A stretch of DNA of 64,000 nt from positions 186,001 through 250,000 of IMG/VR virus record IMGVR_UViG_3300029983_000007; one strand, given 5' to 3'. A program made the translations under genes and the position numbers. The notes below the pieces were generated by a model. The model searched no databases, was not told the origin of the DNA, and worked only from the letters and a program-made list of their open reading frames with translations. Below, one piece after another: positions 13,291 to 60,100 of the stretch. Position 1 is the first letter of the stretch. Each line of letters begins with the position of its first letter.

Positions 13291-15564
13291 ATGATAGAAA
13301 CATTAGTGTCTAATAGTAATGGAGTATCTTTAAAAACTCACTCGTTAGCTGTTCAAAAAATAGCAGTTATAATGGCTGAAAGATTAGGATTACCAATTGA
13401 TATACAAAATGCTATATCAAAAGCTGCTTTGTTACATGACATTGGAAAATCTTATATTCCTTTTCAAAATTATGTATCAAAAAAAGTTGTATCTGAAGAG
13501 TTTACTAATAATAAAATATTTCATCATGAAATTTCATGGGCTATACTTAGATATCTTATGAATATTGATAAAGATTATAATTATAGTATTTTATATTCTA
13601 TATATTGGCATCATTCCAGAGATATGAGTAATAAAAATAAAGAATATGCATCATCGATATTAGAAAAATTAACAGATGATGATAAACAAAGAGTATTAAC
13701 TGTGTATAATGAATTAACTGGTGAAAATAAAGTTTTATCAGATCTTGATGTTAATATCATGAATGATAAAATTCCTGATTATTATATAAATAAAGATGAT
13801 AAAATTTGTTCATTGAATATTATTGTTATGTCTTGTGTAGTTTCTTCAGATAGATATGTATCATCAATAAATATAGACCAGAATAAAATTTTAATTGATG
13901 ATAATTATTGTAATGAAATTGTTGATTCTATAGATTATTCTCCTACAAAAAATTATATAACACCAAAAAATTATGATATTGATCGTTTTAATTATCAATT
14001 ATCTTGTGCTGGTGATATAAATAGTAATCAAACTTCTGAATTGAAAGCACCTGCTGGTTATGGTAAAACTATTAATGGCTTACTTGCTTGGATTAAATCT
14101 GGGAATAGAAAATTAATTTGGGTTTGTCCAAGAAATACAATAGCGGAAACTCTATTTGATGGTGTTAAAAATGAACTTAATGCATTAAGTATCAATAATA
14201 TTAGTGTTGAATTGTTTCTTACTGGAGAAAGACGTGATATTTATAATGAAAACAATAATATAGATTTCACATCGGATATTATAATCACTAATATTGATAA
14301 TTTTTTGACTCCTACCATTAATAATTTTGTTAGAGATAGAATGTACTCATTATTATCAAGTTATGTTATTTTTGATGAATTTCATGAATTAGTTGCGTCT
14401 GAGCCGTACTTTGCTTGTTTTGTTAATATCATGAATGTTAGACATAGATATACAAATAGTAAAACATTACTGATGAGTGCGACCCCTACAATGATGACAA
14501 ATTTATGGGATAACTCAATTAAAGGAACTGCTATTTTACCAAATGAAACTAATCATTATAATGCTGCTCATTCTAAGAAATTTAGAATAAATTTCTTAGA
14601 TGATATAACTTTAGTAAATCCTCAACTAAATAGTTTATTTATAACAAATTCAATAAAATCTTCTCAAACAAAAACTATTGATGACGATTATTCAGTTATA
14701 GCGCATAGTAAATATATGATTGATGACAGAAAGTGTATAATTGATAGTATATTTGATATGTATGGTAAAAATAAGAAGATTCAAAATAAATTAGATGTTA
14801 TATCTGCGCCATTGATTCAAGCTGCTATGGATTTATCTTTTGGTATTATGACTGAAATTCCTAAATCTCCAGAAGATACATTTCAAAGATTGGGTAGACT
14901 TAATAGATGGGGAGAATATGATGTAGTTGATTATAATATTTTAGTTAATATTAATGATAAAAAAATAAATTTAAGTGAATTAGCTTCAATTAATCTTACT
15001 TATGACATAAAATTAAATAAATTGTGGATTGATTATTTAAAAAATAATATTATTGATAAATATGAATATACATTAGATGAATTGTACATTAAATACAATG
15101 TTTTTAATTCAATGTATAAAAAAGAAATAAATGAATATATTAATGATAGATACATTAAAAGTAGAGAATCATTATCTAAATTATTTCCAAGAAAATATAT
15201 AAATAAAGATACAAAAAAAATAGTATCATCAGGTTCTAAACTTAGGGACAATGGATCAAATAATATTTATTGTATATATAAAATATATAATACTGATGAG
15301 TATACAGATGTATTTAGTATTGATTCTAATGGTTCAGATATGGATAAACATGAAGATAATACTACTCAAACTAATCAGATTCGTTCTATTAAGAAATTGT
15401 TAACTGATAGTAGATTTGAATATAATAAACATAGATTATTAACAGGTAACAAATTTACTAGTAATAAATTATTTGAATCTGCAAAAAATCCTAAGACTCC
15501 ATATATTTGTTACCATAAAGAATATCATCCAAAATTAGGGCTTATATCAATTTATTTATTATAA
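13291..15564 (+). CDS. cas3: CRISPR-associated HD nuclease/SF2 helicase Cas3
   Basis: HD domain: LKTH, ALLHDIGK, HHEIS, WHHS, SSDR; helicase: APAGYGKT, DEFH, SAT, QAAMDLS, QRLGRLNRWG. Confidence 0.95.
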   Translation: MIETLVSNSNGVSLKTHSLAVQKIAVIMAERLGLPIDIQNAISKAALLHDIGKSYIPFQNYVSKKVVSEEFTNNKIFHHEISWAILRYLMNIDKDYNYSILYSIYWHHSRDMSNKNKEYASSILEKLTDDDKQRVLTVYNELTGENKVLSDLDVNIMNDKIPDYYINKDDKICSLNIIVMSCVVSSDRYVSSINIDQNKILIDDNYCNEIVDSIDYSPTKNYITPKNYDIDRFNYQLSCAGDINSNQTSELKAPAGYGKTINGLLAWIKSGNRKLIWVCPRNTIAETLFDGVKNELNALSINNISVELFLTGERRDIYNENNNIDFTSDIIITNIDNFLTPTINNFVRDRMYSLLSSYVIFDEFHELVASEPYFACFVNIMNVRHRYTNSKTLLMSATPTMMTNLWDNSIKGTAILPNETNHYNAAHSKKFRINFLDDITLVNPQLNSLFITNSIKSSQTKTIDDDYSVIAHSKYMIDDRKCIIDSIFDMYGKNKKIQNKLDVISAPLIQAAMDLSFGIMTEIPKSPEDTFQRLGRLNRWGEYDVVDYNILVNINDKKINLSELASINLTYDIKLNKLWIDYLKNNIIDKYEYTLDELYIKYNVFNSMYKKEINEYINDRYIKSRESLSKLFPRKYINKDTKKIVSSGSKLRDNGSNNIYCIYKIYNTDEYTDVFSIDSNGSDMDKHEDNTTQTNQIRSIKKLLTDSRFEYNKHRLLTGNKFTSNKLFESAKNPKTPYICYHKEYHPKLGLISIYLL

Positions 15565-15956: not shown

Positions 15957-17921
15957 ATGACAAAAAGTAATAATATCAATAATGTTAAACATCCCATTAT
16001 TAGAACAAAAAGTTTACGTAATGGTTCTGTAACAAAAAACAACAAGTCATATATAAGAACATATGATTTAAGTCGTTATAGTAATGATCAGTTAGTGAAT
16101 GCATTATATAGCAAAAAGTGGAACACAAACAGAAGAAGATTTATTGCTGATATATACTATTTATTAGATGAAAGGATTGCAGCAGGAAAATGTACTAAAT
16201 ATGAAATTGACAATTTGAAATATTTAGCTAATATAAAAAAGCATAATATAGTAAAATCTGTCAATAATAATAGTAGAACAACTACCACAAATACTACAAT
16301 TCCAGTCTCTAATAGTTTAGTTAGTTTAAAATATCGTATCAATAGTTTATCAAATGAAATATTTCGTATTACTGGTGCTAGATTTAAAAAGCTAAACAGG
16401 ACTGATGATGTATCAGATAAAGCACATGTATTTTATGATCAGATTTTTGCTTCATTACATTGTATACATAATATGTTGATGGCAAAAGATAATTATAAAC
16501 ATAGTAGATATAATATGTTAACTGCAGAAACTCAAGCAGGAAAAACAGGAGTTGTTCGTAATGTAATATTTTTATTGGAAACTTATCCTAAATTGAGAGA
16601 ATATCTTGGTTTAGAATTTGGAGGTAGCGTAATAATAACTCCAATGTGTGACAATGCAAATAAAGAACAATTAAAAACTGATATTTCACATGGCGAATGC
16701 AGACAAGACAATCAAAAACTTTTAAAGTCAAAAGGAATCATGCATAATCCAGATATGCTTAGTTGGTCAAGAAATAATCAATATGGAAACTTGCATGACT
16801 GTATTATATTTGTAGATGAATCTCACTTAGCATCAGGTGTTAGTGGTGCTATGAATAGTTATCTTCAAAAAAATAATATAAATTTGAATGGCTCTACTAA
16901 TTTATCTAAAAATAACATTTTTTTATTCACAATATCAGCTACTCCATATGAAGAGCATGTTGGTAATTTGTTATTTAAAAAAAAGAATACAATAGAGTTA
17001 GCTCATGGACCTAATTATAAAGGATTGGATTATTTTTTGAAAAACAATTTTTTTAGACAATCATTTGATTTGTCAACTACTGAAGGTGAGAATCATTTTA
17101 AGAATGAAGTAGAAAGTTTCAATCATAAAATTGGTTATTATATTGTCAGAATAAATATTAGTACAGATACTGATAATTTGATACCAGAAGGATTTTCAAC
17201 TTTAACATATTTTGAGAAAGATAAAGAAGTTATTAATGAAACATTGAGAAAAATACCTGATACACCTACTCTTATATTTGTAAAAGAGAAAATGAAACAA
17301 TCATATCAATTAGATAAACAAAATATTGTAATGATGTTTGATAGATCAGTTGTTCATGATTCTGATTATAGAACAAGTTTTATTGTACAAAGTTTTGCAG
17401 GTAGATTTTGTGGATATCATAATTATAATGCTATTATATACACAGAAATAAATGATGTGAAACTTCATTTAGATTATTTAAAAAATAAAAATCATGTACC
17501 ACACTGTAAGCGTGTTAATAATGATAAGAAATTTTCATTCAAGGAAAAAAATAAATCACAGCAGTCATCATATAGTAATAAAAATGACTTATCATATGCA
17601 AATAACTTTACATTAAAGATTGGATATAAAACACAGAATGATGGTTATATAACATTAAACAATAATATCATAACAATATATTTAGATAATAAGAGGAATT
17701 TAGTATTATCTAAAAAATCAAAAGTTGAAACAGAATTTCTTTCTTCTTATATTGAAGACTATGTTGTTTGCTCAGATATTAAAACACCTTGTAATTCATT
17801 TTTAGATGCTAAGAATGCACTTGAATCGTATTGTAAGATAGTATCATCAAAAACAAAAATTGATGATGTGAAAACAAAAAATGGTAAAAAATTCATTGAA
17901 TTATTGGAGTTTAATTTTTGA
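15957..17921 (+). CDS. SF2 helicase-like ATPase (DExH), reminiscent of Z1-domain/restriction-associated helicases
   Basis: AETQAGKTG, IFVDESH, ISATP, QSFAGRFCGY; basic N-terminal extension; promoter TTTG(15903)-N20-TACATTTG. Confidence 0.65.
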   Translation: MTKSNNINNVKHPIIRTKSLRNGSVTKNNKSYIRTYDLSRYSNDQLVNALYSKKWNTNRRRFIADIYYLLDERIAAGKCTKYEIDNLKYLANIKKHNIVKSVNNNSRTTTTNTTIPVSNSLVSLKYRINSLSNEIFRITGARFKKLNRTDDVSDKAHVFYDQIFASLHCIHNMLMAKDNYKHSRYNMLTAETQAGKTGVVRNVIFLLETYPKLREYLGLEFGGSVIITPMCDNANKEQLKTDISHGECRQDNQKLLKSKGIMHNPDMLSWSRNNQYGNLHDCIIFVDESHLASGVSGAMNSYLQKNNINLNGSTNLSKNNIFLFTISATPYEEHVGNLLFKKKNTIELAHGPNYKGLDYFLKNNFFRQSFDLSTTEGENHFKNEVESFNHKIGYYIVRINISTDTDNLIPEGFSTLTYFEKDKEVINETLRKIPDTPTLIFVKEKMKQSYQLDKQNIVMMFDRSVVHDSDYRTSFIVQSFAGRFCGYHNYNAIIYTEINDVKLHLDYLKNKNHVPHCKRVNNDKKFSFKEKNKSQQSSYSNKNDLSYANNFTLKIGYKTQNDGYITLNNNIITIYLDNKRNLVLSKKSKVETEFLSSYIEDYVVCSDIKTPCNSFLDAKNALESYCKIVSSKTKIDDVKTKNGKKFIELLEFNF

Positions 17922-18048
17922 TTTTTTATTAACTACTATTAACAAAAAAATATAAATTTATATTGTATATTTTTTGCTTATTTAAATAATTTTTAGTATC
18001 TTCGATAGAAAGATATTAATTATTAATTTAAAAATTTAAAAATATAGC

Positions 18049-18825
18049 ATGAATTTATTGAATATTGAGCAAAACGTTGAAAAACAAGTAGTAAAATGTG
18101 AACACATAGTAGGAGCAAAGATTAAAACTAAATGGACTAAAAATGATGTTATTATAGCTTTTCTTTATACAAAATTTACATTAAGAAAAGTTGGAGTTAC
18201 AGATGAAGCTACACAACTTGAGAATTTTGTTAATGAATATATTGGTTCTATTTCGAACTCATTGAAAATGGAATCACTGAATATTAAATATTTATTGTGT
18301 TTAAAACATAATGAGCAACCAGAAGGATTAGAACATTATTCAAAAACACAGGAACTTGTTGTTAATGAATATGATAAATATAGTGAGAATGAATTATCAG
18401 AAATTGTAAACTTAATATTAGACAGTATGACTGAAGAAGAAAAATTGAAAAACATGGAAATGGCGGATGGAGTTAATGCAGAGATTAATGCAGAGAAAGA
18501 AAAACATCGTTTAGAAGTTCTTGCAAAAAAAGAAGAGAAAGCAAGATTAGCTCTTGTTAAAAAAACTCAGAAAGAAAAATACACAACCACATCAACAGAT
18601 TATAAGCCAATGACATTTAAGCAGATGAATCCATCCAAGAAAAAATATGTTGCTAGCATTGTGAGTAATGTATTTGCAAATATTGGAGATGTTCTTGATC
18701 ACAAAAAATATGGCAAAGGCTCTGTTAAAGATATAGTTGGAGACAGAATTACAATTAACTTTCGTGATAAAGCAGTAGGAAGTAAAATTTTATTGTTTGA
18801 TGAAAAGTTTTTCAATTTAGTTTAA
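18049..18825 (+). CDS. helical N-domain plus coiled coil plus C-terminal PcrA/UvrD-like Tudor (SH3-fold) domain
   Basis: KWTKNDVIIA...SLKMESLNIKY shared with 23223-23972; C-terminal IGDVLDHKKYGKGSVKDIVGDRITINF. Confidence 0.55.
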   Translation: MNLLNIEQNVEKQVVKCEHIVGAKIKTKWTKNDVIIAFLYTKFTLRKVGVTDEATQLENFVNEYIGSISNSLKMESLNIKYLLCLKHNEQPEGLEHYSKTQELVVNEYDKYSENELSEIVNLILDSMTEEEKLKNMEMADGVNAEINAEKEKHRLEVLAKKEEKARLALVKKTQKEKYTTTSTDYKPMTFKQMNPSKKKYVASIVSNVFANIGDVLDHKKYGKGSVKDIVGDRITINFRDKAVGSKILLFDEKFFNLV

Positions 18826-20842: not shown

Positions 20843-22015
20843 TTATAGGTTAAATTTACTTGTATTTATTAAATAATCAAATTCTTTCTCTATTTTAGGA
20901 TTTAAAATGTCTTTAATATATTTTAAATTATCTATGTTGTCATCTAATATTGTTTTCTGATAGTCATATGATTTTAATATACTAATATCCATATGTCTTA
21001 ATTTTGATATGATAGATGGATATTGTTTCATTTTATTAATCCAAAAATCCTCATTGTAATTAGTTATGAATTCAGTAGTGAATGAATTTTCATATTTACC
21101 ATCATAATTACTTATAATCCAATATGCTAATTCTAAATACTTTGTACTTAAAATTTTACCATTTCTATAATACTTAAAAGGTAATCCTTGTATTATAGAA
21201 TAACCTTTATCTTTTACTTTATCAAGTATAACTCTTACAAATCTATCTAATTTTTCACTTATCATTAATGAAATCAAGTTATCTAATCTATATTGATATT
21301 TATCTTCTGAATGTGTAGCATATGAAGAAAATGAATAATCTTCCTCAATATTTTTAGAGTTAACTAAAAATGATACCGCATCTAAATTACCTTTATGAAT
21401 AACATTATAAATATGCCTATATGTTACTGGTACTCCTAAATTGATTAGATATTTTATAACATCAGGTTTGTCGTTGTATTTTGTTGCATAATCTATACAA
21501 TTTTCTGGTGCTCGTGAAAATGTAGCATCTTTCTTTTTATTCGGATCTAATCCTGTGCTAATTAAAAACTTAACAATATCTAATTTTCCTTTAAAACAAG
21601 CAGTCATTAATAAATCTTGATTGAAAGTTACTCCTAAATCTTTTAATAATTTGAATTTTTTGACATCTGAATTATGGTATACAAGATTATTTAAAAATTC
21701 TGGTTCTTTAATTAATGCTTTATAAATATTATCATTTTTTAATATAGATTTGAAATAAATATAAGGTAGTTCACAAACTGCTGTGTTATTTTTTGAAAAT
21801 TTTTTTGCTGGTACATAATCAACTAATTTGACTGCTAATTCTGGAAGCTCTCTACAAGCAAAATAGAATAATCTATCTTCTTCGTATTCTGTTATATTCT
21901 TTGTGTTGATAATATTTATATAATGATTAACATCAATAATAGATTTAAAATCTTCATAAAAGCTATAAAATACTGGCTTTGTCTTTTTCTCATATATTTT
22001 AAAATTTGTTATCAT
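20843..22015 (-). CDS. ankyrin-repeat protein with KFNL tail
   Basis: LMTACFKGKLDIVKFLISTGLDPN, CIDYA...VIKYLINLG, IHKGNLDAVSFLV; likely start MITNFKIYE at 22015; ends TSKFNL. Confidence 0.7.
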   Translation of the reverse strand: MITNFKIYEKKTKPVFYSFYEDFKSIIDVNHYINIINTKNITEYEEDRLFYFACRELPELAVKLVDYVPAKKFSKNNTAVCELPYIYFKSILKNDNIYKALIKEPEFLNNLVYHNSDVKKFKLLKDLGVTFNQDLLMTACFKGKLDIVKFLISTGLDPNKKKDATFSRAPENCIDYATKYNDKPDVIKYLINLGVPVTYRHIYNVIHKGNLDAVSFLVNSKNIEEDYSFSSYATHSEDKYQYRLDNLISLMISEKLDRFVRVILDKVKDKGYSIIQGLPFKYYRNGKILSTKYLELAYWIISNYDGKYENSFTTEFITNYNEDFWINKMKQYPSIISKLRHMDISILKSYDYQKTILDDNIDNLKYIKDILNPKIEKEFDYLINTSKFNL

Positions 22016-22037
22016 ATCATTATATATAAAAAACAAT

Positions 22038-28078: not shown

Positions 28079-29004
28079 GAAGTCGTCTTGACTTTTTGAG
28101 GAGGGAAACAATATTTAAAAGAAGGGAACGTTTTGTATGCGACAAAACAACAATAACATTCCCTTCATGGTGTACCAAGTACTTGACAAAGATACAATAA
28201 GAATTGAAATACTGCCTCATTTATCGGTAGCAAAAAGAGGTTTTAAGACCACAAGTTGTCTGATTGAAGTAGTAAATAGCATTTTATATAAGCTGAAAAC
28301 AGGCTGTCAATGGTATCTGTTGCCAGTAAGAAGTTTGTTCTCAGATGTAGTCTTAAGCCATAAAACCATTTTTGGTCATTTTCGCAAATGGTGTAAGAGT
28401 GGTGAGTGGGAATACTGTTGGACGAAAATACTGGAAAAATACAAGTCGTTCTTGGATTTATCTAGTGCCGACTTGGATGGTAGTCATGCCACAGCACTTC
28501 GCGGAGGCGAAGAAGTGGCTTATCAGGGTAGGAAGAAAAGGAAAACGACAAATTCTTTGTTTCTTTCTGACCGACAGGGTTTACCTTTAGCTTTATCAAA
28601 TCCAATTGCAGGTAACCATAATGATTTATATGCAATTGAGAAATCCTCAGAAGAACTATTTTCAACTTTAGGGGAGGCAAAGATTAGTACAGATGGTCTT
28701 TTTATTAATGCTGATTCTGGTTTTGATTCAAAAAACTTTCGATCGATTTGTGAAAAATGGGGAGTAATTCCCAATGTTGCTTTCAACTATCGCAATGGTG
28801 AAAACAAAGATGAGTATTTATTAGATGATTTACTTTACAAACAAAGATACGTCATTGAAAGAACAAATGCTTGGATGGACAGTTTCAGATCGCTGCTTAA
28901 TAGATTTGATTATACGGTTTCAAGCTGGAAAAGCTTCAATTACATAGCTTTTATGATTATATTATTCAAGAAAATTAAAACTAACAAAAAGTCAAGATGA
29001 CTTC
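28079..29004 (+). mobile_element. IS5-family insertion sequence, 926 bp
   Basis: 19-bp terminal inverted repeats GAAGTCGTCTTGACTTTTT / AAAAAGTCAAGATGACTTC (1 mismatch), 3-bp direct repeat ATT on both sides, GC content above the flanks. Confidence 0.92.
28137..29000 (+). CDS. tnp: IS5-family DDE transposase
   Basis: LYKLKTGCQWYLLP, FRKWCKSG, LDGSH, GNHND, ADSGFD, RYVIERTNAWM. Confidence 0.95.
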   Translation: MRQNNNNIPFMVYQVLDKDTIRIEILPHLSVAKRGFKTTSCLIEVVNSILYKLKTGCQWYLLPVRSLFSDVVLSHKTIFGHFRKWCKSGEWEYCWTKILEKYKSFLDLSSADLDGSHATALRGGEEVAYQGRKKRKTTNSLFLSDRQGLPLALSNPIAGNHNDLYAIEKSSEELFSTLGEAKISTDGLFINADSGFDSKNFRSICEKWGVIPNVAFNYRNGENKDEYLLDDLLYKQRYVIERTNAWMDSFRSLLNRFDYTVSSWKSFNYIAFMIILFKKIKTNKKSR

Positions 29005-30965: not shown

Positions 30966-30997
30966 CTTGCACAATAAAAAAATTTATATTATCTTTG
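30966..30997 (+). promoter_or_regulatory. Bacteroidota-type promoter upstream of the small ORF and tRNA cluster
   Basis: CTTG, 20 nt, TATCTTTG. Confidence 0.65.
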
Positions 30998-31116
30998 TAT
31001 TGGTTTTTAATGTCTATTACTTGTTGTGAAACAAATGACGTTTAATTTTAATTTCATAATTAAAAAAACTCTCACTGATGAAAATTCAGTGAGAGTTTTG
31101 AAAAATTAAAAATATA

Positions 31117-31320
31117 ATGAAAGAGTTGATAGATGATAGTTTAGTTCCAGGTAGAGGATATTATTATTTACTAGATTGGAATGAATCTGATAGATGGGAA
31201 ACAATGTTCAGACTATTCGAAAAAACCAGACTGTGTGATTTAGAATTACATGAATACATACAGTTGCTTGAAATTGCAACAAAAAAAGATTTAGAAGCAT
31301 TAAAAATAGAAAAAACTTAA
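31117..31320 (+). CDS. small hypothetical protein
   Basis: 67 aa ORF with A-rich upstream region. Confidence 0.5.
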   Translation: MKELIDDSLVPGRGYYYLLDWNESDRWETMFRLFEKTRLCDLELHEYIQLLEIATKKDLEALKIEKT

Positions 31321-31513
31321 TAAAATTATATTACTATATACATTACAATAAAAAATTAAAATTCTTATGAATAACAATATCTCAAATATGATTCAGCAAC
31401 AACAACAAACTTACGTTTGATTGGGTTAGCATCATGTTTGTTTTTCACCCAATCCTGAAATGGTTTGGGTTTTTTTGTGCCCAACTTTTTAAGTTGGGTT
31501 TTTTGTTAAATAC

Positions 31514-31584
31514 TGCTCTATGTTGTAATGATAGCAATCAGGAATTTGGATCCTGCAGATTAGGTTTGAGTCCTAATAGAGCAA
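31514..31584 (+). tRNA. trnQ: tRNA-Gln(UUG), atypical
   Basis: Acceptor TGCTCTA/TAGAGCA, anticodon arm CAGGA-ATTTGGA-TCCTG, T arm TTAGG-TTTGAGT-CCTAA; A19/U56 compensatory pair; no encoded CCA. Confidence 0.8.
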
Positions 31585-31598
31585 CAACACAATGTCAC

Positions 31599-31683
31599 TG
31601 CCTTGTGATGGAATTGGTTAAACATGTCAGTCTTTGAAACTGATGCTCATATGAGCTTGTGGGTTCGAATCCCACTAAGGCGA
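31599..31683 (+). tRNA. class II-like (long variable arm) tRNA with Gln anticodon UUG
   Basis: Acceptor TGCCTTG/TAAGGCG, D loop AATTGGTTAAA, anticodon arm TCAGT-CTTTGAA-ACTGA, variable hairpin GCTC-ATAT-GAGC, T arm GTGGG-TTCGAAT-CCCAC. Confidence 0.85.
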
Positions 31684-31693
31684 CAAATTATAT

Positions 31694-31766
31694 TGTTCAT
31701 TAGCGCAATTGGTAGAGCGTCAGATTCTGGATCTGAAGGTTGAAAGTCCGAATCTTTCATGAATAA
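31694..31766 (+). tRNA. trnQ: tRNA-Gln(CUG)
   Basis: Acceptor TGTTCAT/ATGAATA, D arm GCGC-AATTGGTA-GAGC, anticodon arm TCAGA-TTCTGGA-TCTGA, T arm GAAAG-TCCGAAT-CTTTC. Confidence 0.8.
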
Positions 31767-31775
31767 CAAATACAT

Positions 31776-31847
31776 TCTCATATTGTATAACGGCTATTAC
31801 ATTTGTTTTTGGAACAAATAATCTAGGTTCAACTCCTAGTGTGAGAA
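31776..31847 (+). tRNA. trnQ: tRNA-Gln(UUG)
   Basis: Acceptor TCTCATA/TGTGAGA, anticodon arm TTTGT-TTTTGGA-ACAAA, T arm CTAGG-TTCAACT-CCTAG. Confidence 0.8.
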
Positions 31848-31885
31848 CAAAAAACTCTGAAATTTAAATTTCAGAGTTTTTTTTA
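31848..31885. terminator. bidirectional terminator after the tRNA cluster
   Basis: AAAAACTCTGAAATTT/AAATTTCAGAGTTTTT inverted repeat. Confidence 0.75.
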
Positions 31886-49207: not shown

Positions 49208-51592
49208 ATGAACGTAACTCAAGGAGTTTTTAAAAATACTAGTATCTATGGAATGACATTTATAGATAAATACTCAGGAATAAAATCAATTATAACAAGT
49301 GAAGGCTATATGTCTAAATTTTTAGATAAGGCAAATACTAATACATCTCAAACATCTACTATTTTATCAGATGATAATACTTATTATAACATAGTTGAAG
49401 ATTGCACTTTAAATAATTGTAATATTGAGACTGGTAGATTTATTAATTGTATTATAACTGGAAATAATGATATGTCAAATTATATAAAAAACGGATATTT
49501 TAGTGGCTGTACATTTTATAATTATGTTATTGATGACGGTAAATTTGTTGGCTGTTCAATGGATGATACTAATATTTTCAATAATGGTTTTTGGGATAAT
49601 GAAAATTCTGATTTTTCATGGACAAAACCATGGACAAGTGGAGTATGGAATAGTGGTAAATTTGATAATCCTTATGGCTGGTATGGTGGAACATTTAATG
49701 GTGGAACATTTGAGAATAGTTATTGGTCAGGAGGTACTGCCAACGGAGGTACATTTATTGGTATAAAATGGCATGATGGACTAGTACGTTATGCTGATTT
49801 TATTGATGAATGTATATTCGAAAATGGTGTGTTTAATAATGGAACATTTACAGATAGTTCATTTAATGGAGGTTATTTTAATGGAGGTACAATGAAGAAT
49901 TCAAATATTTATGGTAGTTCAGTGAAGTCTGTTATAAATGGAGGAATAATTTTTAATTGTAATATTGATGGAGATGTTGATATTAATGGTGGATATTTTG
50001 AAAATGATTCAAATTTATATTCAATATATAATGCAAATGTATACAATTCAAATATGTCAAATTTAAATGTCATAGGTGGTAATTTTTATAATGGAAATTA
50101 TAAAAATATAATTTTTTATGGAGGTGATATATTTAACGGTTTCTATTATAATATAAATTCATCAGTATTAAAAATGCTAAGTGAAGATGGAAATTTTTTA
50201 ATAATGGAAGATGGTAGTAATGCATTATTTGAAGAAAGTGCAAATGAATTATTATTTGGATTAACTATTCATAATGGAACATTTAGAAATAGTATATTTG
50301 AAGATACAAATATAAAAAATGGAAATTTTACTAATTGTTATTCAAAAAATAGTCTTTTTGAATATAGTGTATATACTGATGGAAATATGCTTGATTGTGT
50401 TTGGAGAGATGGATATTGGAATGATGGAGCATTTATTACTACTATGATAAATTCAGGATCATCAAATTCATTAGCAATAAATGTAAATGCAACAACAACA
50501 TCAACTACTACAATTTATTCTAGTCCAACCACCACTACAACTACTACTTACTCTGGTTTAACTACTACAACCACCACTACAATGTTAGGTACATTTATAA
50601 TAAATAGTATTAATTATAGTGAATTGTTTGATAATTCTGTCGATATTAAATTTAGTGGAGTACCATCAGGATCAACAACTATCATAATTTATTGCTCATC
50701 AGATGGAATAAATTACGATTTTAGTTCAGCAGGTAATGTAGTTTCTCCTAGAAAATTTAGTTTAAATGGCAAGCCAAATACTACATTAACATTTAAATTG
50801 ACAGCATTAGGAGGTATTAGTCCAGTAGATTCAAATATTTACTTATTTAATAATGTAAATACAACTACAACTACTACATCTTCATATAATCCTATATCTT
50901 CTGTAGATTTAACTGAAAAATCTATGTATTCATTATATATGTTTATTTATGGTGGAGTTCCTCCATATACATATACATTTTCAGCATATCCTGAAACTTG
51001 TGGATCATTGTCAATAAGTCCTGGTACAACAAACATAAATAGTAACACACTATCATATACAGCTGGAAATTATATCGGCGCGATATATCATGTTGTTGCA
51101 TCTGTTCATGACTCAGTAAACACATTACATAATGTATATTCTAATGAGTTGATAGTAACTATGACATGTTTAGTTCCTAATACATTAATTACAATGTTTG
51201 ATAATTCAACTAAGTTATTAAGTGATATTAATATTGGAGATAAGTTGTTATCAATTTCTAATGATGCATATGTTGAATCCAATGTTACTAGTAAGTCAAC
51301 ACATCTTGTTTTTAGTATAGTTAACATTAATCAAGGTTTATTAGAATCATCAGAAGGACATGTACATTTAATTAAAATTGAAGATTCAATAATTGAAATA
51401 GATGCAATAAATCTTAAAGTTGGTGACATTTTAATAAATAAAGATAAGCAAGAAGTTCCAATAACAAGCATATCGATAGTAAATATGGAGCAATTAGTTA
51501 TAAATATATCGACTGATTTAGGTACATATATAGCGAACAATATACTAACACATAATAAATCTATTTGTCGTGAGCAAATTCAATTGATTTAA
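49208..51592 (+). CDS. large virion-type protein: Gly/Asn beta-helix repeats, Thr linkers, Ig-like modules, C-terminal Hint domain
   Basis: GGTFNGGTFENSYWSGG repeats; C-terminal TCLVPNTLITM..K..SDINIGD..L...GH...LKVGD.L...VINIST...TYIANNILTHNK matches Hint blocks A, B, F and G. Confidence 0.7.
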   Translation: MNVTQGVFKNTSIYGMTFIDKYSGIKSIITSEGYMSKFLDKANTNTSQTSTILSDDNTYYNIVEDCTLNNCNIETGRFINCIITGNNDMSNYIKNGYFSGCTFYNYVIDDGKFVGCSMDDTNIFNNGFWDNENSDFSWTKPWTSGVWNSGKFDNPYGWYGGTFNGGTFENSYWSGGTANGGTFIGIKWHDGLVRYADFIDECIFENGVFNNGTFTDSSFNGGYFNGGTMKNSNIYGSSVKSVINGGIIFNCNIDGDVDINGGYFENDSNLYSIYNANVYNSNMSNLNVIGGNFYNGNYKNIIFYGGDIFNGFYYNINSSVLKMLSEDGNFLIMEDGSNALFEESANELLFGLTIHNGTFRNSIFEDTNIKNGNFTNCYSKNSLFEYSVYTDGNMLDCVWRDGYWNDGAFITTMINSGSSNSLAINVNATTTSTTTIYSSPTTTTTTTYSGLTTTTTTTMLGTFIINSINYSELFDNSVDIKFSGVPSGSTTIIIYCSSDGINYDFSSAGNVVSPRKFSLNGKPNTTLTFKLTALGGISPVDSNIYLFNNVNTTTTTTSSYNPISSVDLTEKSMYSLYMFIYGGVPPYTYTFSAYPETCGSLSISPGTTNINSNTLSYTAGNYIGAIYHVVASVHDSVNTLHNVYSNELIVTMTCLVPNTLITMFDNSTKLLSDINIGDKLLSISNDAYVESNVTSKSTHLVFSIVNINQGLLESSEGHVHLIKIEDSIIEIDAINLKVGDILINKDKQEVPITSISIVNMEQLVINISTDLGTYIANNILTHNKSICREQIQLI

Positions 51593-54941: not shown

Positions 54942-56078
54942 ATGTGGATAAAAATTAATGATGTACCTTTACATATGAGTTTAATCATAAACATTAGTAA
55001 AATTGAAAAAATAAATAGTGATAATATTAATCAATTCTTTGATAGATTTCGTACATTTGATTTATCAAATGTACGTCATAGAAATAGTATTGATATTGTT
55101 GAACGTGGGTTTAAATTAGAACGTGTATATAATCATTCTAAACAAAACAGTATAGGTGAGCTATGTCATTATGAAAAAGGTAATTTTCCTGGTGAAATTA
55201 TTATAAAAGAATCAAATTTTAAAATGAATAGTGACAAATATTTATTTGAAGTTAATTATAAAAAAATGAATGATGATGAAATATATAAAATATCATCAGA
55301 AATATATGACACATTTGAAGATGCAGAAAAAACACAAGACTTTTTATTATCAAAAATGAACGATATTGAAATGTCAGTAAGTAATATTAAAATATAATAA
55401 TATAAAAATGTGGATAAAAATTAATGGATTACCAATACAAGTCAGTTCAATTAAAAACATAAGTAAAATTGAACAAATATCAGAAGATATGATAATTAAA
55501 TACTATAATAAAAGTTCAAGAAACAGGTTTTATAGTTCAGATGATATTAGTGAAAGCAGTAAAATTCAATATGTTAATAAATATATTACGTCAAATAACA
55601 AATCAACTGGAAACGTAATTAATTATTTAAAAAAAGAAGATGGTTCAGATGATTATGACCATATTATAAAATCCACATTTAAATTGAATTGTGACATATT
55701 TATATTTTATATTTGTGCAGAAGAAATATCATATTCTGAAGGTAAATGTAATTTATTTAATAATAATATTTATTCAAAAATTTTTGATACAATTGAAGAA
55801 GCGCAAGTTGTTCACAATAACTTATTGACAAAATTAAATGAAATTGAAATGTCACTTGTCAATATTGAAATATAAAAATGAATTATAATGATATTTATAA
55901 GATTCCAAATATATCTGAGCTAGATAATTTAGCATATAGATTATATTGGAATGATAATCGTACATGTTTTGAAGGAAATGTAAATTTTTTAAAAAACCGT
56001 ATTAAATATATTAAATATTATGACTCAGCAAATCTATATTTAAGGAAAGAAAAAATAAAAAAACTCAGTAAGATTTGA
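54942..56078 (+). CDS. paralog pair MWIKIN... (54942-55397, 55408-55875) plus a small RKxKL-tailed ORF (55878-56078)
   Basis: Shared MWIKIN..P...S.I.NISKIE.I and S.I.DT.E.A......LL.K.N.IEMS..NI.I. Confidence 0.75.
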
Positions 56079-56095: not shown

Positions 56096-56935
56096 TTAAT
56101 AGTTCATTACAATTATTTCAACTGATGTTTTTTTACCATTCTTTGAAATTTTATCATAATCAAAATTGAGTTCTTTATATCTAAATCCATCTCTTATTAA
56201 TTGATTTAATAACCAAGATTTTTTATTGTTGTGTTCTAGTAATCCACTAATCATAAATGTAGAACCATCTTTGCTCAAATTTAAAAGATAATCGTGTAAT
56301 TGAATATCCATCTCTTGTTGATATACAACATTGTACCCAGCCTCTGAGATTTGATTTTTTGATATGTTTCCATTGGTATCTTCACAGTACCCATATGGCG
56401 GATCAGCATATATAAAAGATGGCTTTAATATTTTAATATCATTGAAATTTTTATTACTAAAAACAATTTTATCTTTATATTTTCTTATATGTTCAGTGAA
56501 CTCAATTACTTTTTTTTCTGTGCTATTATTCCATGAGCGATTTCCCCACGTCTGATTAAAGTCACCTGACTTGTTAAATCTCATCAAATTAGAGTTACAA
56601 CATAACATCAAAGCCCATAATCCTTCAGGCGTTTTATTTTTATTGTAATCTTCCCTTAGTTTTATGTAATCATCTTGATTTTCTTTATTAGGACATAACA
56701 TTTTAGTTTTTTTAATTATATCATCAGATTCAAGTAATCCTTTATGTATTCCTATTAAATCTGATATTATATCATTAGCTAGTACTTTTATATATTTGTC
56801 TACAACATTTGTATATATTGACCCACCTCCGCAGAAAAGGTCAATAAAATAATCTTTAGTATAATCCATCTCTGGTATTAATTGATCAAGAAGTTTGTAT
56901 TTGCTTCCAGTATACGAAAATGGTGTATTTATCAT
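56096..56935 (-). CDS. DNA N6-adenine methyltransferase (Dam/D12 class)
   Basis: PFSYTGSKYKL, DLFCGGGSI, ANDI, F.YADPPY. Confidence 0.9.
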   Translation of the reverse strand: MINTPFSYTGSKYKLLDQLIPEMDYTKDYFIDLFCGGGSIYTNVVDKYIKVLANDIISDLIGIHKGLLESDDIIKKTKMLCPNKENQDDYIKLREDYNKNKTPEGLWALMLCCNSNLMRFNKSGDFNQTWGNRSWNNSTEKKVIEFTEHIRKYKDKIVFSNKNFNDIKILKPSFIYADPPYGYCEDTNGNISKNQISEAGYNVVYQQEMDIQLHDYLLNLSKDGSTFMISGLLEHNNKKSWLLNQLIRDGFRYKELNFDYDKISKNGKKTSVEIIVMNY

Positions 56936-57189
56936 TTGTTGTTAGATTTGTTGTTAGTTTTTGATGATGTGCACTTATTAGTTTTTGATGATGTATTAAC
57001 ATTTAAACTTTTAATTATTAATAATTTACTTCTTCTTTCTTTTTTCAAAAAAGAATCTTTAATTGCTTTTGATGTTTTAACTGATGCGATAATATAAGAC
57101 TAGTCATTGGATACTATCATTCTATTTTCTTCCAAATATGAATCACTATATATGATAATCCCTTGTAAAGTAAAATATTTATTCAGCAT
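56932..57189 (-). pseudogene. RKxKL-family gene with an in-frame TAG (57100-57102)
   Basis: MLNKYFTLQG...VSND*SYIIASVK...KKERRSKLLIIK...NK*; start and stop overlap the neighbouring genes. Confidence 0.6.
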
Positions 57190-60100
57190 TGTATTTTAGT
57201 ATTTCTATTATTTTATTATTTCTTTGTTCTTTAATGTTTATAAAATATTTATCAATATCACATTTAAGCCAAATTGAACATTCTTTTTTTATTGTTTTTT
57301 GTTTTTCATCAAATGTAGAAACTGTATCATTATTTAAGTGTTCTATTACGTTTTTAATTTTGTTATTTTCTATATAATAATATTTTTCTTTAATATAAAA
57401 TATTTTATATTTTTCATTAAAAGTATATTTTTCTGATGTAAAATGATTACTCATATTAATATCCTTCACTAAAATCAAAATATCTCCAATTTTATACATT
57501 TTAATTTTTAATTAAAAATAAATCAAATTTACTTGCTACTTCTTTTAATCTATTATTAATGTCTTCAACTACATCATCATACTTATCAATAGTATTTTTA
57601 TTATCCATAAAATACACTTCCCAAAGCCAACCTCTTAGCTCTTGTAAATCACTAAAAGTTTCTATTAATTCTGATGCTTTAATAGGGTCATCTGAATATA
57701 ATTTTATAAGTAATTCAGAATAAGGCTCTATGCAAACAACTGAACTTATTTCTATATAATTATCTTTTTTATATACTTCTATATCAACTATAGATATTTT
57801 TTTATATTTTAATCTAAAATTCATTTTATAATTTTTTATTTTAATATTTTCCATTTATTTATTTTATTTAGTCTAGTTAATTTATTTAAACGTATAATTT
57901 TATCAGTATATCTATATTCACAATTATAATCCCAATTAGTATATGCTAAAAAAATTCCCAAGAAATGAATATTTAAGTCAAAACAGGTGTCTTCCTTACG
58001 TCCTTTCTTTGCTCCATTTGTACTACAATGAAAAAGTTTCCAGTGTTTTTTGTGATAACTTATTGATATTGATTTGCTACAATATCGTTTCTTACCATTA
58101 ATTTTTTTATTAAACCAGATTGTCATTTTATGTCATTAGTTTTCTTTGATAATTACTTAAATATTTTTCATTTGTGTGAGGATCACCATATTTGTCAATT
58201 GGAATTTTTTGTTATAATCCTTTCCAACTATTTCCAACTGTAAAATTTCTAACTGTTAATAGATTATTTTTGCTTAATGCAGTGAAGAAATCTCTTGAGT
58301 GAGCATTATATACAGTTTGTCCTACAAAAACTTGTGCTTGATTTTATAAAATAATTATCCATTTAATTTTATTATTTTTTTCTTTCTAGTAATTTTTTTA
58401 AGTAATTCTATCTCATCTAAAAATAATTTATCTGGATTATTTATATCATCACTATAAGTAACAATTTTTTCGTCATTAAGATATATACATTTAAATATAT
58501 ATGGACCGTTATTACCTTGAAGATAATTTATTTCTAGTCTTAAAATATCCTTTGTGTATGTTGTAATATCATACTCAAATAAATCTTTCTTCTTAATTAA
58601 CAAATGATTATATTTTTTACCAATAATAACAATTTTGTTATTATATTCTATACAGCAATAATTTTCACGCTTTTTTATTCTGTTTGAATTTATGTAAACG
58701 CCAAAAGTGTAACCAGAACCATTTAAAATATAAGATTCATAGATATAATATTCTTTATTTTCTATTATAATTGAATATTCATTTTCGATAAATTCAAGTT
58801 TAAATTCACTCTTCATATAATTTGTTTAATTTTCTCAATTTGAATTTTCTGATTTTATTTTTATATTTTGGATCATATTTTTCCCAATGAGAATAAAATT
58901 TATTTAATAGTATATTTAAATCAATTTTATCTCCATTCTTTTTTTGATGGTAATACATTAATATTATAGATGATATATCATCAGGATGATCTATAAAATA
59001 ATTATCAATAAACCAGTTTTTCAATTCGCTTTTTTCTTCCCATAATTTAAAATTATTTCTTACCCACATACCTAACCCCATATGTGAAATTGATATTGAC
59101 TCTTCTTCATTTGTTTTTAGCCAATCTTTTTTTCCAACAATGTCTAAATTGTCAATAATTTTATATGTTTCTTCTAAGTTATTTGGAATTTCAAATTTGA
59201 TCATTTATACTATAGTTTATTTTTTTGATTTTTTCTCTTCTATAATCTGATAGACTTTGTGTGTGTAGTGTGAGATATTGAGATTCTACAGTAGAACCAA
59301 TTGGAACAATTGTATAATGAAATGTATATTTTGTTTCTATTGGAGTTTCAATTTTATCAAATACAATATTTTTTTGTTCATCTACGAATACAAAACAATG
59401 CACACCAACACCATCATTATGAATTTGATTTGTACGTCCTAATATAACACAATCCTCTTTTAATGAATTATCTATTTCGTATTTAACTCGATTAAGATCA
59501 TAGATATATTTGTATAAAAAATTTTTAGTTTTAGAATTTGATACATAAAAATTAGGTGGTCCAATTCTGCCTGCCACTGCTATGTAGCTACCTGCTGCTG
59601 TGATTCTACTACAAATATTATTTTTTATTTTTTTTGGTTTATCAGAATAGGATTCTTGACTATATTTTTTATCAATTTCTTCTAATATAATATCATAAAT
59701 ATCAATTTTTTTAATATCATTTTTTAAATTTTCTCTGTTTTTGTTACCTAATTCTAAAATAATAGGTATAAATTTACTTCTCATTTCATTGTTTATAATA
59801 GATTTAATATGTATAGTTAATTGTTCATCTGTATATATATTATTAGTAATAGTGAAGTTAAATTTGTTAAGATTTATATTTTTACTACACATATTAACAG
59901 CAAATGTATTTGGATATATAGATTCATTGATTGCTCCCATTGTTGAACTTGATGGAGTTGTCATATTTGAAAAATTTGTGTCCAGATAACTAATCTGTGG
60001 CATTAAACTATTAACTGGAAATATTGTGAACATATCATTCTCTAATTCTGATAAATTAATTTTTTTATTCATTCTGATTTATTATTTTTTTCAATTTAAA

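Follow-up and report, generated by a model that had tools for sequence, protein, structure and literature searches.

Leader-peptide (ribosome-mediated) transcription attenuators control several amino-acid operons, among them those with the leaders trpL, hisL, pheL, leuL, thrL and ilvL, and are represented in Bacteroidota by the Rfam family Bacteroid-trp (RF01692). They combine a short ORF containing a run of cognate codons, overlapping alternative hairpins and an intrinsic terminator just upstream of the regulated genes, the read-out depending on ribosome position. The pheST (pheM leader) attenuator of E. coli phenylalanyl-tRNA synthetase adjusts a component of the translation apparatus to the availability of the cognate charged tRNA, although it is cellular and Phe-specific and controls a synthetase, not the tRNA itself. 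T-box riboswitches also report the state of one tRNA species by transcription attenuation and control genes of that amino acid's translation supply, but they bind uncharged tRNA directly and need no ORF. In phages, tRNA arrays, some members of which carry anticodon-loop changes, supplement or replace host tRNAs (T4, T5, mycobacteriophage C1; PARIS and retron evasion; PMC10264068, PMC11555353, PMC11464382), and they are not known to be gated by a cognate-codon leader. tRNA genes themselves are normally thought to be controlled by promoter strength and growth-rate signals.

Here we analysed a 64,000-nt stretch (hereafter the window; positions 186,001 to 250,000 of IMG/VR record IMGVR_UViG_3300029983_000007) of a huge peat-bog phage, in which four tandem tRNA-Gln genes lie behind a glutamine-rich mini-gene. 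As in the trp/his-type systems, we found a short ORF with cognate codons, mutually exclusive hairpins and intrinsic terminators immediately upstream of the genes. In contrast with those systems, the regulated genes would be tRNA genes and not biosynthetic enzymes, the element is phage-encoded, and the sensed residue would be Gln, for which we know of no leader-peptide attenuator and found none; nor did we find such a control described for tRNA genes. Moreover, the regulatory codons lie upstream of segment 1 and the stop codon overlaps it, so that the 1:2 pairing is the antiterminator and the system is predicted to be ON without translation; it also comes in 3-segment and 5-segment versions. 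No sequence match to any Rfam leader was found, and no T-box hit was obtained up to E = 5 over 31250-31520.

The four tRNAs had first been noticed in a sequence-only reading, and the observation held. ARAGORN called four + strand tRNAs at 31514-31585 (UUG), 31599-31684 (UUG, 86 nt), 31694-31767 (CUG) and 31776-31848 (UUG), which scored 49.5, 51.9, 58.3 and 57.3 bits, respectively, with Rfam RF00005 (gathering score 29). All four carry the YUG anticodon with U35 and G36 of tRNA-Gln. Cloverleaves confirmed U1 in all four (U1-A72 in copies 1, 3 and 4, U1.G72 in copy 2), A73 in all, A32 in copy 1 only, a TTTGAGT T-loop and no GG in the D-loop of copy 1, and a TCCGAAT T-loop in copy 3. The claim that the bodies are divergent also held, since pairwise identity among the four was 51-63%, the same as between different isotypes in this genome. 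The proposed A19-U56 compensation in copy 1 is plausible, but the numbering in its short D-loop is ambiguous. Homologues in relatives carry compensatory stem changes and all pass the tRNA gathering score, indicating constrained genes and not chance matches; aminoacylation with glutamine was not assayed.

The features that had been read as non-canonical turned out to be of host type. U1-A72, A73 and the G37-A38 loop (TTCTGGA) are the tRNA-Gln features of the lineage of the likely host, Paludibacter (Bacteroidales), whose tRNA-Gln genes also end ...A-C-aa. The ACAA tail in place of CCA is not Gln-specific, as all 13 ARAGORN-called tRNAs of the phage genome end N73-C followed by an A-rich stretch. 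Copy 1 (A32, G37) is host-like, with 71-75% identity to Paludibacter tRNA-Gln, and its homologue in the L011-type relatives carries CUG instead. The anticodon loop of copy 3 is identical to that of the host tRNA-Gln(CUG), whereas its homologue in L133, a divergent lineage recovered from metagenomes, carries UUG. Copy 4 shows a compensatory T-stem change in the L011 type. Copy 2 (A37) has a long, class II-like variable arm with a 5-bp stem, which the earlier reading had not noted, and shares its anticodon stem and T arm with the phage's own tRNA-Tyr (70% identity, identical anticodon stem). Its acceptor stem matches that of a short-arm tRNA-Gln in the distant relative L016; it is conserved in the L007 and L011 types and is the only UUG copy in the L007 type.

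The earlier reading had also missed what lies just upstream. A leader mini-ORF, MNNNISNMIQQQQQTYV (31367-31420, +; 17 codons plus TGA), lies 94 nt upstream of the tRNA-Gln cluster and starts with ATG in an A-rich, SD-less context typical of this phage's genes. It contains five consecutive Gln codons (31394-31408, +), one CAG followed by four CAA, so that both codon types read by the downstream tRNAs are present. It is the only ATG mini-ORF with a run of at least 4 Gln in 330 kb of this genome on both strands, and no other tRNA group in the genome or in the relative L006 has a codon-run leader. In relatives the mini-ORF is conserved as MNNNILNMIQQQQQTYV, MKNLFNTVQQQQQMNSV and MKNLLNTVQQQQQISV, each followed by a stop. 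The Gln run is invariant in all five sequence variants except for a synonymous CAA/CAG change in the fifth codon, 6 of 7 substitutions are at third codon positions (P about 0.007), and the one indel is 3 nt. This coding signature points to translation, unlike a T-box, but translation itself has not been observed.

The stop codon (31418-31420) overlaps the first of five + strand segments with alternative pairings. Segment 1 (31414-31426, CGTTTGATTGGGT; core GATTGGGT, 31419-31426) pairs with segment 2 (31447-31462, ACCCAATCCTGAAATG) through 8 core pairs plus a lineage-specific extension, with a dG of -12.7 to -16.1 kcal/mol in all variants. Segment 2 can alternatively pair with segment 3 (31465-31476, TTGGGT plus a T-run) to form intrinsic terminator T1 (-10.0 to -11.1 kcal/mol), a modest hairpin of 6-8 pairs, 3 of them G-C. 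Segment 3 can also pair with segment 4 (31480-31487, CCCAACTT) as a second antiterminator (-7.7 kcal/mol), a hairpin that a terminator-like scan listed at 31465-31484. Segment 4 with segment 5 (31491-31504, AAGTTGGG plus a T-run) forms intrinsic terminator T2 (-7.1 to -11.6 kcal/mol; scan hit at 31479-31499, 9 pairs), which ends 9 nt before tRNA 1. Segment 4 is present in the window, L007 and L011 types and absent in L016 and L133, which have one terminator only. The 1:2 pairing was more stable than 2:3 in all five variants, masking segment 1 yielded the terminators, and the fold z-score was -2.55. However, for the window sequence the equilibrium MFE favours the terminators even when segment 1 is free, and in the full-length fold T2 forms alongside 1:2, so the switch has to be kinetic, as in trp.

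A leader-anchored and a tRNA-anchored scan of IMG/VR returned the same 12 related contigs, while a DNA search of the locus against INPHARED phages gave no match. In a metagenome scan with at least 120 motif hits, 4 of the 120 examined had tRNAs downstream and all four were tRNA-Gln clusters, adding the single new lineage L133; further relaxed scans added none, and none of the 138 unrelated Gln-run plus T-run sites examined had a tRNA downstream. The system recurs in three deep lineages (flanking proteins 78% and 48% identical), which keep the five Gln codons, an ORF length of 16-17 codons, the TGA overlapping segment 1 and the 82 nt from the first Gln codon to the end of the segment 3 T-run, a distance that is the same in all five variants, while the other residues differ. 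Several compensatory changes were seen: the middle pair of 2:3 goes from C-G (window) to U.G (L016) to U-A (L133), a T..A pair in 4:5 becomes A..T in the L007 type, and the extensions of 1:2 are lineage-specific and complementary. With only five variants from three lineages of one phage clade, covariation lacks statistical power and these events leave it undecided whether the pairings are supported by covariation; they were tabulated by script because the MAFFT alignment mis-registered segment 2 in L016 and L133, and no formal covariation statistic was computed. Population variants in contigs from four DNA runs, which were fragmentary, fall in loops and non-Gln codons.

Regarding transcription into the leader, an orphan ORF of 67 aa (31117-31320, +), possibly co-transcribed with it, has no Pfam or PHROG match; among ten neighbouring ORFs these searches found only an IS4/5 transposase. 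A sigma-70-like site lies at 31089-31118 and a Bacteroidota-type TAtcTTTG at 30990, but their assignment as promoters is an inference and the promoter is not identified. A conserved A-rich block, TAAAAATAGAAAAAACTTAATAAAA (31301-31325, +), has a 21-nt core invariant between the window group and L016. It is a candidate promoter or UP-like element, although its distance to the ATG varies between lineages and no function is assigned; a role as a general phage promoter was rejected, since there is only one copy in 330 kb at up to 1 mismatch. No promoter-like site was found between the terminators and tRNA 1.

We consider it probable, and hold this reading with reasonable confidence, that the four genes form one operon gated by a ribosome-mediated transcription attenuator that senses decoding of Gln codons. 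What the analysis shows is that transcripts entering from upstream carry the Gln-rich ORF and then meet one terminator (L016, L133) or two (window type), ending 9 nt (window) to about 40 nt (L133) before the first tRNA, without a promoter-like site in that gap in the window; the mechanism that follows is inferred. When Gln-tRNA(Gln) is plentiful, the ribosome would run to the TGA stop, where its footprint, about 12-13 nt beyond the A-site codon, would cover segment 1, so that T1 and T2 form, transcription stops and no tRNA is made. When Gln-tRNA is scarce, the ribosome would stall on the Gln run with its leading edge at or before segment 1, the last Gln codon lying 12-13 nt before the segment 1 core. 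Segment 1 would then pair with segment 2, in a hairpin that is transcribed first and is more stable than 2:3, and segment 3 with segment 4, neither terminator would form, and RNA polymerase would read into the tRNA-Gln genes. A search for RNA runs gave none; there are no expression, 3'-end or charging data, the response of read-through to limiting Gln-tRNA was not measured, and neither the RNA polymerase that transcribes this region nor its coupling to ribosomes in a Bacteroidota host is known. The design would be ON without any translation, unlike classical trp/his attenuators. Consistently with feasibility, phage genes start without SD, as the leader does, and the candidate host lineage has a Bacteroid-trp leader (RF01692, 54.4 bits); as the fold of that leader is dominated by a strong terminator, comparing architectures left the matter undecided and only its presence is used here. 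The host's own tRNA-Gln genes have no similar leader.

Such a circuit would be a negative feedback loop between Gln decoding capacity and tRNA-Gln supply, the shortest possible one. If true, it would extend leader-peptide attenuation to a new class of target, a new amino acid and a virus, show that an uncultivated huge phage of a Bacteroidota host relies on transcription-translation coupling, imply that Gln-tRNA availability is a variable, limiting quantity during infection, which makes the tRNA-warfare hypothesis directly testable for this isotype, and provide a compact natural sensor of Gln decoding for engineering. The analysis also corrects the sequence-only reading: the apparently exotic tRNA features are mimicry of the host's tRNA-Gln identity set (U1, A73, U35-G36). 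Why Gln in particular runs short is not resolved; candidates are host or competitor tRNA nucleases, the phage's CAA bias against a CAG-preferring host, and glutamine (nitrogen) limitation.

The interpretation given in the sequence-only reading, strong selection for Gln decoding as nuclease insurance or as raw material for recoding, was partly supported. Dedicated selection on Gln decoding is supported, since the cluster is conserved in every relative found (2-4 copies, always one CUG plus one to three UUG) and is the only tRNA group with its own cognate-codon leader/attenuator. That reading had, however, accepted in advance that it would be refuted if all isotypes in the genome were similarly multiplied and grouped, and by this test it is weakened, as multiplication on divergent bodies was not special to Gln but is general in this phage group: L006 has Ile x4 (+1 UAU), Asn x3, Asp x3, Cys x2, Glu x2 and Met x2, and its same-anticodon copies are as divergent (mean identity 0.61) as different-anticodon pairs (0.56). 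An ordinary constitutive array for codon compensation, with a fortuitous mini-ORF and hairpins that merely terminate or insulate the upstream gene, would fit this generality, the many tRNAs commonly carried by huge phages, and the contrast between a 24% GC phage that uses CAA for 87% of its Gln codons and a candidate host that prefers CAG (57%). We nonetheless regard it as unlikely. Gln is only 2.35% of phage codons, and absolute CAA demand rises only about 1.4-fold (1.5% to 2.0% of codons), against about 3-fold for AGA, ATA and TTA, so codon compensation was rejected as the full explanation and demand does not explain constitutive multiplicity. Moreover, expression needs read-through of the terminators, a chance ORF would not keep its Gln codons, length, frame and stop overlap across lineages with 48%-identical flanking proteins, and leader and cluster co-occur in 12 of 12 contigs. 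TAG-to-Gln recoding is not supported and appears very improbable, even as a relic, although CUG is one base from CUA and TAG is a rare stop (9 of 285), as expected at 24% GC. Table 11 already puts 86% of the genome in ORFs of at least 100 aa, the largest ORFs do not grow meaningfully under TAG, TGA or other recodings, and no CUA, UUA or UCA anticodon was found in the tRNAs examined, CUA and UUA being absent from the window, the genome fragment, the relatives and the homologous clusters of all five variants.

Insurance against a host or competitor nuclease that depletes tRNA-Gln, with the attenuator making the copies an inducible counter-defence, was not tested; it is compatible with the attenuator, would address why Gln is concerned and remains a tentative possibility. 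Phage tRNAs rescuing nuclease-depleted host tRNAs are documented for other isotypes (PMC10264068, PMC11555353, PMC11464382), the three UUG copies differ from the host UUG anticodon loop at positions 32, 37 or 38 and one carries an extra arm, low codon demand argues for a supply-side problem, and an ON-when-stalled switch fits sudden depletion. On the other hand, no nuclease was identified in host or phage and there is no cleavage evidence, no tRNA repair ligase was found in the 46%-complete genome fragment (the PF09511 search being uninformative, since it hit none of the 14 control genomes), the CUG copy keeps the host loop exactly, and divergent same-anticodon copies occur for many isotypes without any leader. 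In its fullest form, which we consider doubtful although not excluded, this would be the first attenuator found to gate tRNA genes: the phage would monitor how fast ribosomes read Gln codons and, when host tRNA-Gln is destroyed or withheld, for example by an anticodon nuclease triggered by infection, switch on structurally diversified replacements, including a long-arm one, as a self-limiting counter-defence whose design may be more widespread among phage tRNA genes. Alternatively, the same attenuator might read the glutamine (nitrogen) status of the cell through GlnRS charging, and not tRNA abundance, tuning the phage programme to nitrogen-poor peat conditions. The habitat is peat and bog lake, and the host uses GlnRS directly (glnS at 697-720 bits in 5 of 5 Paludibacter MAGs; no GlnRS/GluRS was found in the phage fragment), so charging tracks free glutamine. 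However, this seems unlikely, since tRNAs do not supply glutamine, the response would not relieve amino-acid shortage, and no nitrogen-metabolism gene is in the operon.

We also considered whether copy 2 is not a Gln acceptor but is charged by TyrRS, LeuRS or SerRS and deliberately misreads CAA, given its long variable arm, A73 and Tyr-like core; SerRS and LeuRS ignore the anticodon (compare allo-tRNAs, Mukai et al. 2016, PMC5389517). Like allo-tRNAs, copy 2 combines a long variable arm with an anticodon that normally belongs to class I tRNAs, but it has a normal 7/5 acceptor/T branch, not 8/4 or 9/3, and its acceptor end is Gln-like, not Ser-like. We judge this possibility very unlikely, because its acceptor stem begins with U1 like all the Gln copies and equals that of a normal short-arm tRNA-Gln in L016, and because it sits in the Gln-gated operon. 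Other long-arm tRNAs of this genome keep isotype-typical discriminators (Cys U73, Asn G73). Downstream of copy 4, a hairpin flanked by an A-run and a T-run (31849-31884), bidirectional and terminator-like, closes the tRNA operon, and this operon end is conserved in the related contig L002.

ARAGORN identified exactly four tRNAs in the 64-kb window, all on the + strand, at 31514-31585 (anticodon UUG), 31599-31684 (UUG), 31694-31767 (CUG) and 31776-31848 (UUG), and the Rfam tRNA model scored them at 49.5-58.3 bits, against a gathering score of 29. The sequence-only reading, which had described four tandem glutamine tRNAs on four unrelated bodies, was therefore correct in its observation. Cloverleaf models confirmed most of the details that it had listed, with U1 and A73 in all four tRNAs, A32 in copy 1 only, a TTTGAGT T-loop and a D-loop without GG in copy 1, and a TCCGAAT T-loop in copy 3. 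Pairwise identities among the four were 51-63%, no higher than between different isotypes of this genome. A feature that had gone unnoticed is that copy 2 is 86 nt long with a 5-bp variable-arm stem, and that its anticodon stem and T arm are almost those of the phage's own tRNA-Tyr (70% identity, among the two highest pairs in the genome).

The window corresponds to bases 186001-250000 of a single 330,208-bp IMG/VR virus record at about 24% GC, rated 46% complete by CheckV, so that it represents a fragment of a very large phage, whose tRNA inventory is a lower bound. Moreover, Rfam detected further tRNA-like genes not called by ARAGORN (29-43 bits), outside the window at 54948-55027, 56420-56591, 58720-58875 and 320914-321013 of the record, and the intergenic sequence around 56244-56601 and 58300-58700 showed more tRNA-like stretches, indicating that the tRNAs of this phage are under-called. 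Hallmark genes included a T4-type gp32, helicases and a Cas3-like HD-helicase (window 13291-15564, +; HD domain, DEAD helicase and Cas3 C-terminal domain; CRISPR arrays and other cas genes were not looked for). The standard genetic code fits the genome, and phage genes lack Shine-Dalgarno motifs and have A-rich leaders. The sequencing runs that contain it are peat and lake-water metagenomes. An IS4/5-family DDE transposase at 28137-29000 (+), in a locally GC-richer patch, was 98% identical to a copy in a Paludibacter MAG and 85-88% identical to several others, and is multi-copy in Bacteroidales MAGs; it indicates recent host-to-phage transfer and is the best clue to the host, which we infer to be Paludibacter or a close Bacteroidales relative. 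All five Paludibacter MAGs examined encode a genuine GlnRS.

Comparison with this candidate host showed that the features regarded as non-canonical are host features. Paludibacter tRNA-Gln genes read TGTCTTA...TAAGACA-A-C-aa, with U1-A72, A73, no encoded CCA and the anticodon loops TTCTGGA (CUG) and TTTTGGT (UUG). All 13 ARAGORN-called tRNAs of the phage end in N73-C followed by an A-rich stretch, and the phage encodes a PolyA_pol/CCA-adding-type nucleotidyltransferase (72.8 bits; 294792-295205 of the record, minus strand, outside the window), which fits with all phage tRNAs lacking an encoded CCA. Copy 1 was 71-75% identical to host tRNA-Gln and the anticodon loop of copy 3 was identical to the host CUG loop, while the three UUG copies differed from the host UUG loop at positions 32, 37 or 38.

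Similar multiplication of other isotypes had been named beforehand as an observation that would count against Gln-specific selection. In L006, a related contig, a 20-kb stretch carries 22 tRNAs, with Ile x4 (+1 UAU), Asn x3, Asp x3, Cys x2, Glu x2 and Met x2. Same-anticodon copies (mean identity 0.61) were about as divergent as different-anticodon pairs (0.56), which weakens the argument from multiplicity. Many normally class I isotypes occurred as long-variable-arm tRNAs of 82-89 nt (Cys, Met, Asn and Glu in this genome, at 56716-58286 of the record, outside the window; Asn, Asp, Glu, Met and Cys in L006, at 16420-18249), often beside a short-arm copy of the same anticodon and with isotype-typical discriminators (Cys U73, Asn G73); this is conserved across lineages and has no known function. 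Codon demand did not explain the choice of Gln either. Gln represents 2.35% of phage codons, with CAA:CAG at 87:13, and although the host sample prefers CAG (57%), absolute CAA demand rises only from about 1.5% to 2.0% of codons, whereas AGA, ATA and TTA rise about three-fold.

What distinguishes the Gln cluster is a Gln-codon leader followed by a putative attenuator. Directly upstream lies a mini-ORF at 31367-31420, which reads ATG AAT AAC AAT ATC TCA AAT ATG ATT CAG CAA CAA CAA CAA ACT TAC GTT TGA and encodes MNNNISNMIQQQQQTYV*. It is the only ATG mini-ORF with a run of four or more Gln anywhere in the 330-kb genome, on either strand. Its stop codon overlaps the first of five segments (segment 1, 31414-31426), which can pair in alternative ways: segment 2 (31447-62) pairs with segment 1, as an antiterminator, or with segment 3; segment 3 (31465-70, followed by a T-run) forms terminator T1 with segment 2 or pairs with segment 4; segment 4 (31480-87) pairs with segment 3, as a second antiterminator, or with segment 5; and segment 5 (31491-98, followed by a T-run) forms terminator T2 with segment 4. 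The first tRNA starts 9 nt after T2 and no promoter-like site was found between them, so that the tRNAs can be transcribed only by reading through these terminators. Hairpin energies in all five sequence variants ranked 1:2 (-12.7 to -16.1 kcal/mol) above 2:3 (-10.0 to -11.1 kcal/mol), masking the ribosome footprint at the stop codon left only the terminators, and the region folded better than 197 of 200 shuffled sequences.

Searches with flanking proteins and DNA-pattern scans yielded five distinct versions of the locus from three deep lineages: the window type; the type of contig L007 (six contigs, with only two tRNAs, the long-arm UUG plus a CUG); the type of contig L011 (four tRNAs, with the CUG in copy 1 instead of copy 3); contigs L016, L006 and L048 (three tRNAs and one terminator, the flanking protein being 48% identical); and contig L133, from a bog-lake hypolimnion (four tRNAs and one terminator). 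The leaders are MNNNIS/LNMIQQQQQTYV*, MKNLFNTVQQQQQMNSV* and MKNLLNTVQQQQQISV*. All versions conserve the five Gln codons, the fifth varying synonymously (CAA/CAG), the overlap of the TGA with segment 1, and a distance of exactly 82 nt from the first Gln codon to the end of the first T-run. Six of seven substitutions inside the ORF were at third codon positions (P about 0.007) and the only indel was 3 nt, while non-coding substitutions lay in loops or were compensatory. The middle pair of the 2:3 stem changes from C-G (window) to U.G (L016) to U-A (L133), the 4:5 stem shows T..A to A..T in L007, and each lineage extends 1:2 with its own complementary sequence (CGTTT/AAATG, CGTCTGA/TCAGACG and TCT/GGA). 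These compensatory changes come from only five variants of three lineages, and no formal covariation statistic was computed. Variants in other sequencing runs avoided the Gln codons and segments 1-3. A 21-nt A-rich core within 31301-31325, upstream of the leader, was identical between the window group and the distant L016, only loosely similar in L133 and unique in the genome; it lies at a variable distance from the leader ATG, and its role is unexplained.

The association between leader and tRNAs was specific. A leader-anchored scan and a tRNA-anchored scan of IMG/VR returned the same 12 contigs; among the 120 relaxed motif hits examined in metagenomes, four had tRNAs downstream and all four were tRNA-Gln clusters, whereas none of 138 unrelated Gln-run plus T-run sites examined had a tRNA downstream. 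Every cluster keeps exactly one CUG and one to three UUG copies, all above the tRNA gathering score. Comparison of L011 (10627-10878) with window 31514-31767 showed the CUG anticodon in copy 1 in the former and in copy 3 in the latter, with UUG in the other copy, and copy 3 keeping its acceptor stem but having a replaced body, which suggests anticodon switching and body swapping under selection for one CUG per operon. In L133 (777-938, minus strand), two tRNAs of the operon have 6-nt anticodon loops containing UUG (CUUGAA, CUUGAC) and still scored 40.7 and 54.8 bits as tRNA; they could be unusual decoders or decaying copies. Host tRNA-Gln genes have no such leader and sit behind TAnnTTTG promoter elements, and the other tRNA groups of the phage and of L006 have no codon-run leader.

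The mechanism is inferred, by analogy with trp/his attenuation. In this view, a ribosome that decodes the Gln run quickly would reach the stop and cover segment 1, so that 2:3 and, where present, 4:5 would form and transcription would end. A ribosome stalled on the Gln codons would leave segment 1 free. From established knowledge of ribosome footprints, its leading edge is about 12-13 nt past the A-site codon, which places it at or before 31419; 1:2 would then form first, 3:4 would follow, and polymerase would continue into the tRNA genes. We consider this attenuator reading likely, although there is no experimental evidence for it. As in trp, the switch must be kinetic, because equilibrium folds still favour the terminators in the window version; unlike trp and his, the system is predicted to be ON without translation. 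The mechanism is feasible in this host lineage, as a Paludibacter MAG carries the Rfam leader-peptide attenuator Bacteroid-trp (RF01692, 54.4 bits) in its trp-operon region.

The interpretation offered by the sequence-only reading was supported only in part, and our analysis did not resolve why Gln should be the amino acid sensed. Depletion of tRNA-Gln by a nuclease, which it had proposed, is supported only in general by previous studies (PMC10264068 and related work); the mismatch in CAA/CAG preference between phage and host, and glutamine limitation sensed through GlnRS charging, are the other options. Its alternative suggestion, that the cluster provides raw material for TAG-to-Gln recoding, was not supported.

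Ribosome-mediated attenuation is a classical mechanism; what is new here is the regulated target, the amino acid, the viral setting and the segment logic. Full-text literature searches found no leader-peptide attenuator described upstream of tRNA genes and none for Gln codons, which does not mean that none exists. Elsewhere in the genome, an ORF with four repeats of a DPRYLSGEL-like motif (56798-57750 of the record, minus strand, outside the window; not analysed) is inserted between tRNA-Cys and tRNA-Met, possibly as a homing-endonuclease-type insertion in the tRNA array. The window also encodes an ankyrin-repeat protein (20843-22036, minus strand) and a pentapeptide-repeat protein (49208-51592, plus strand), in a phage of a bacterial host.
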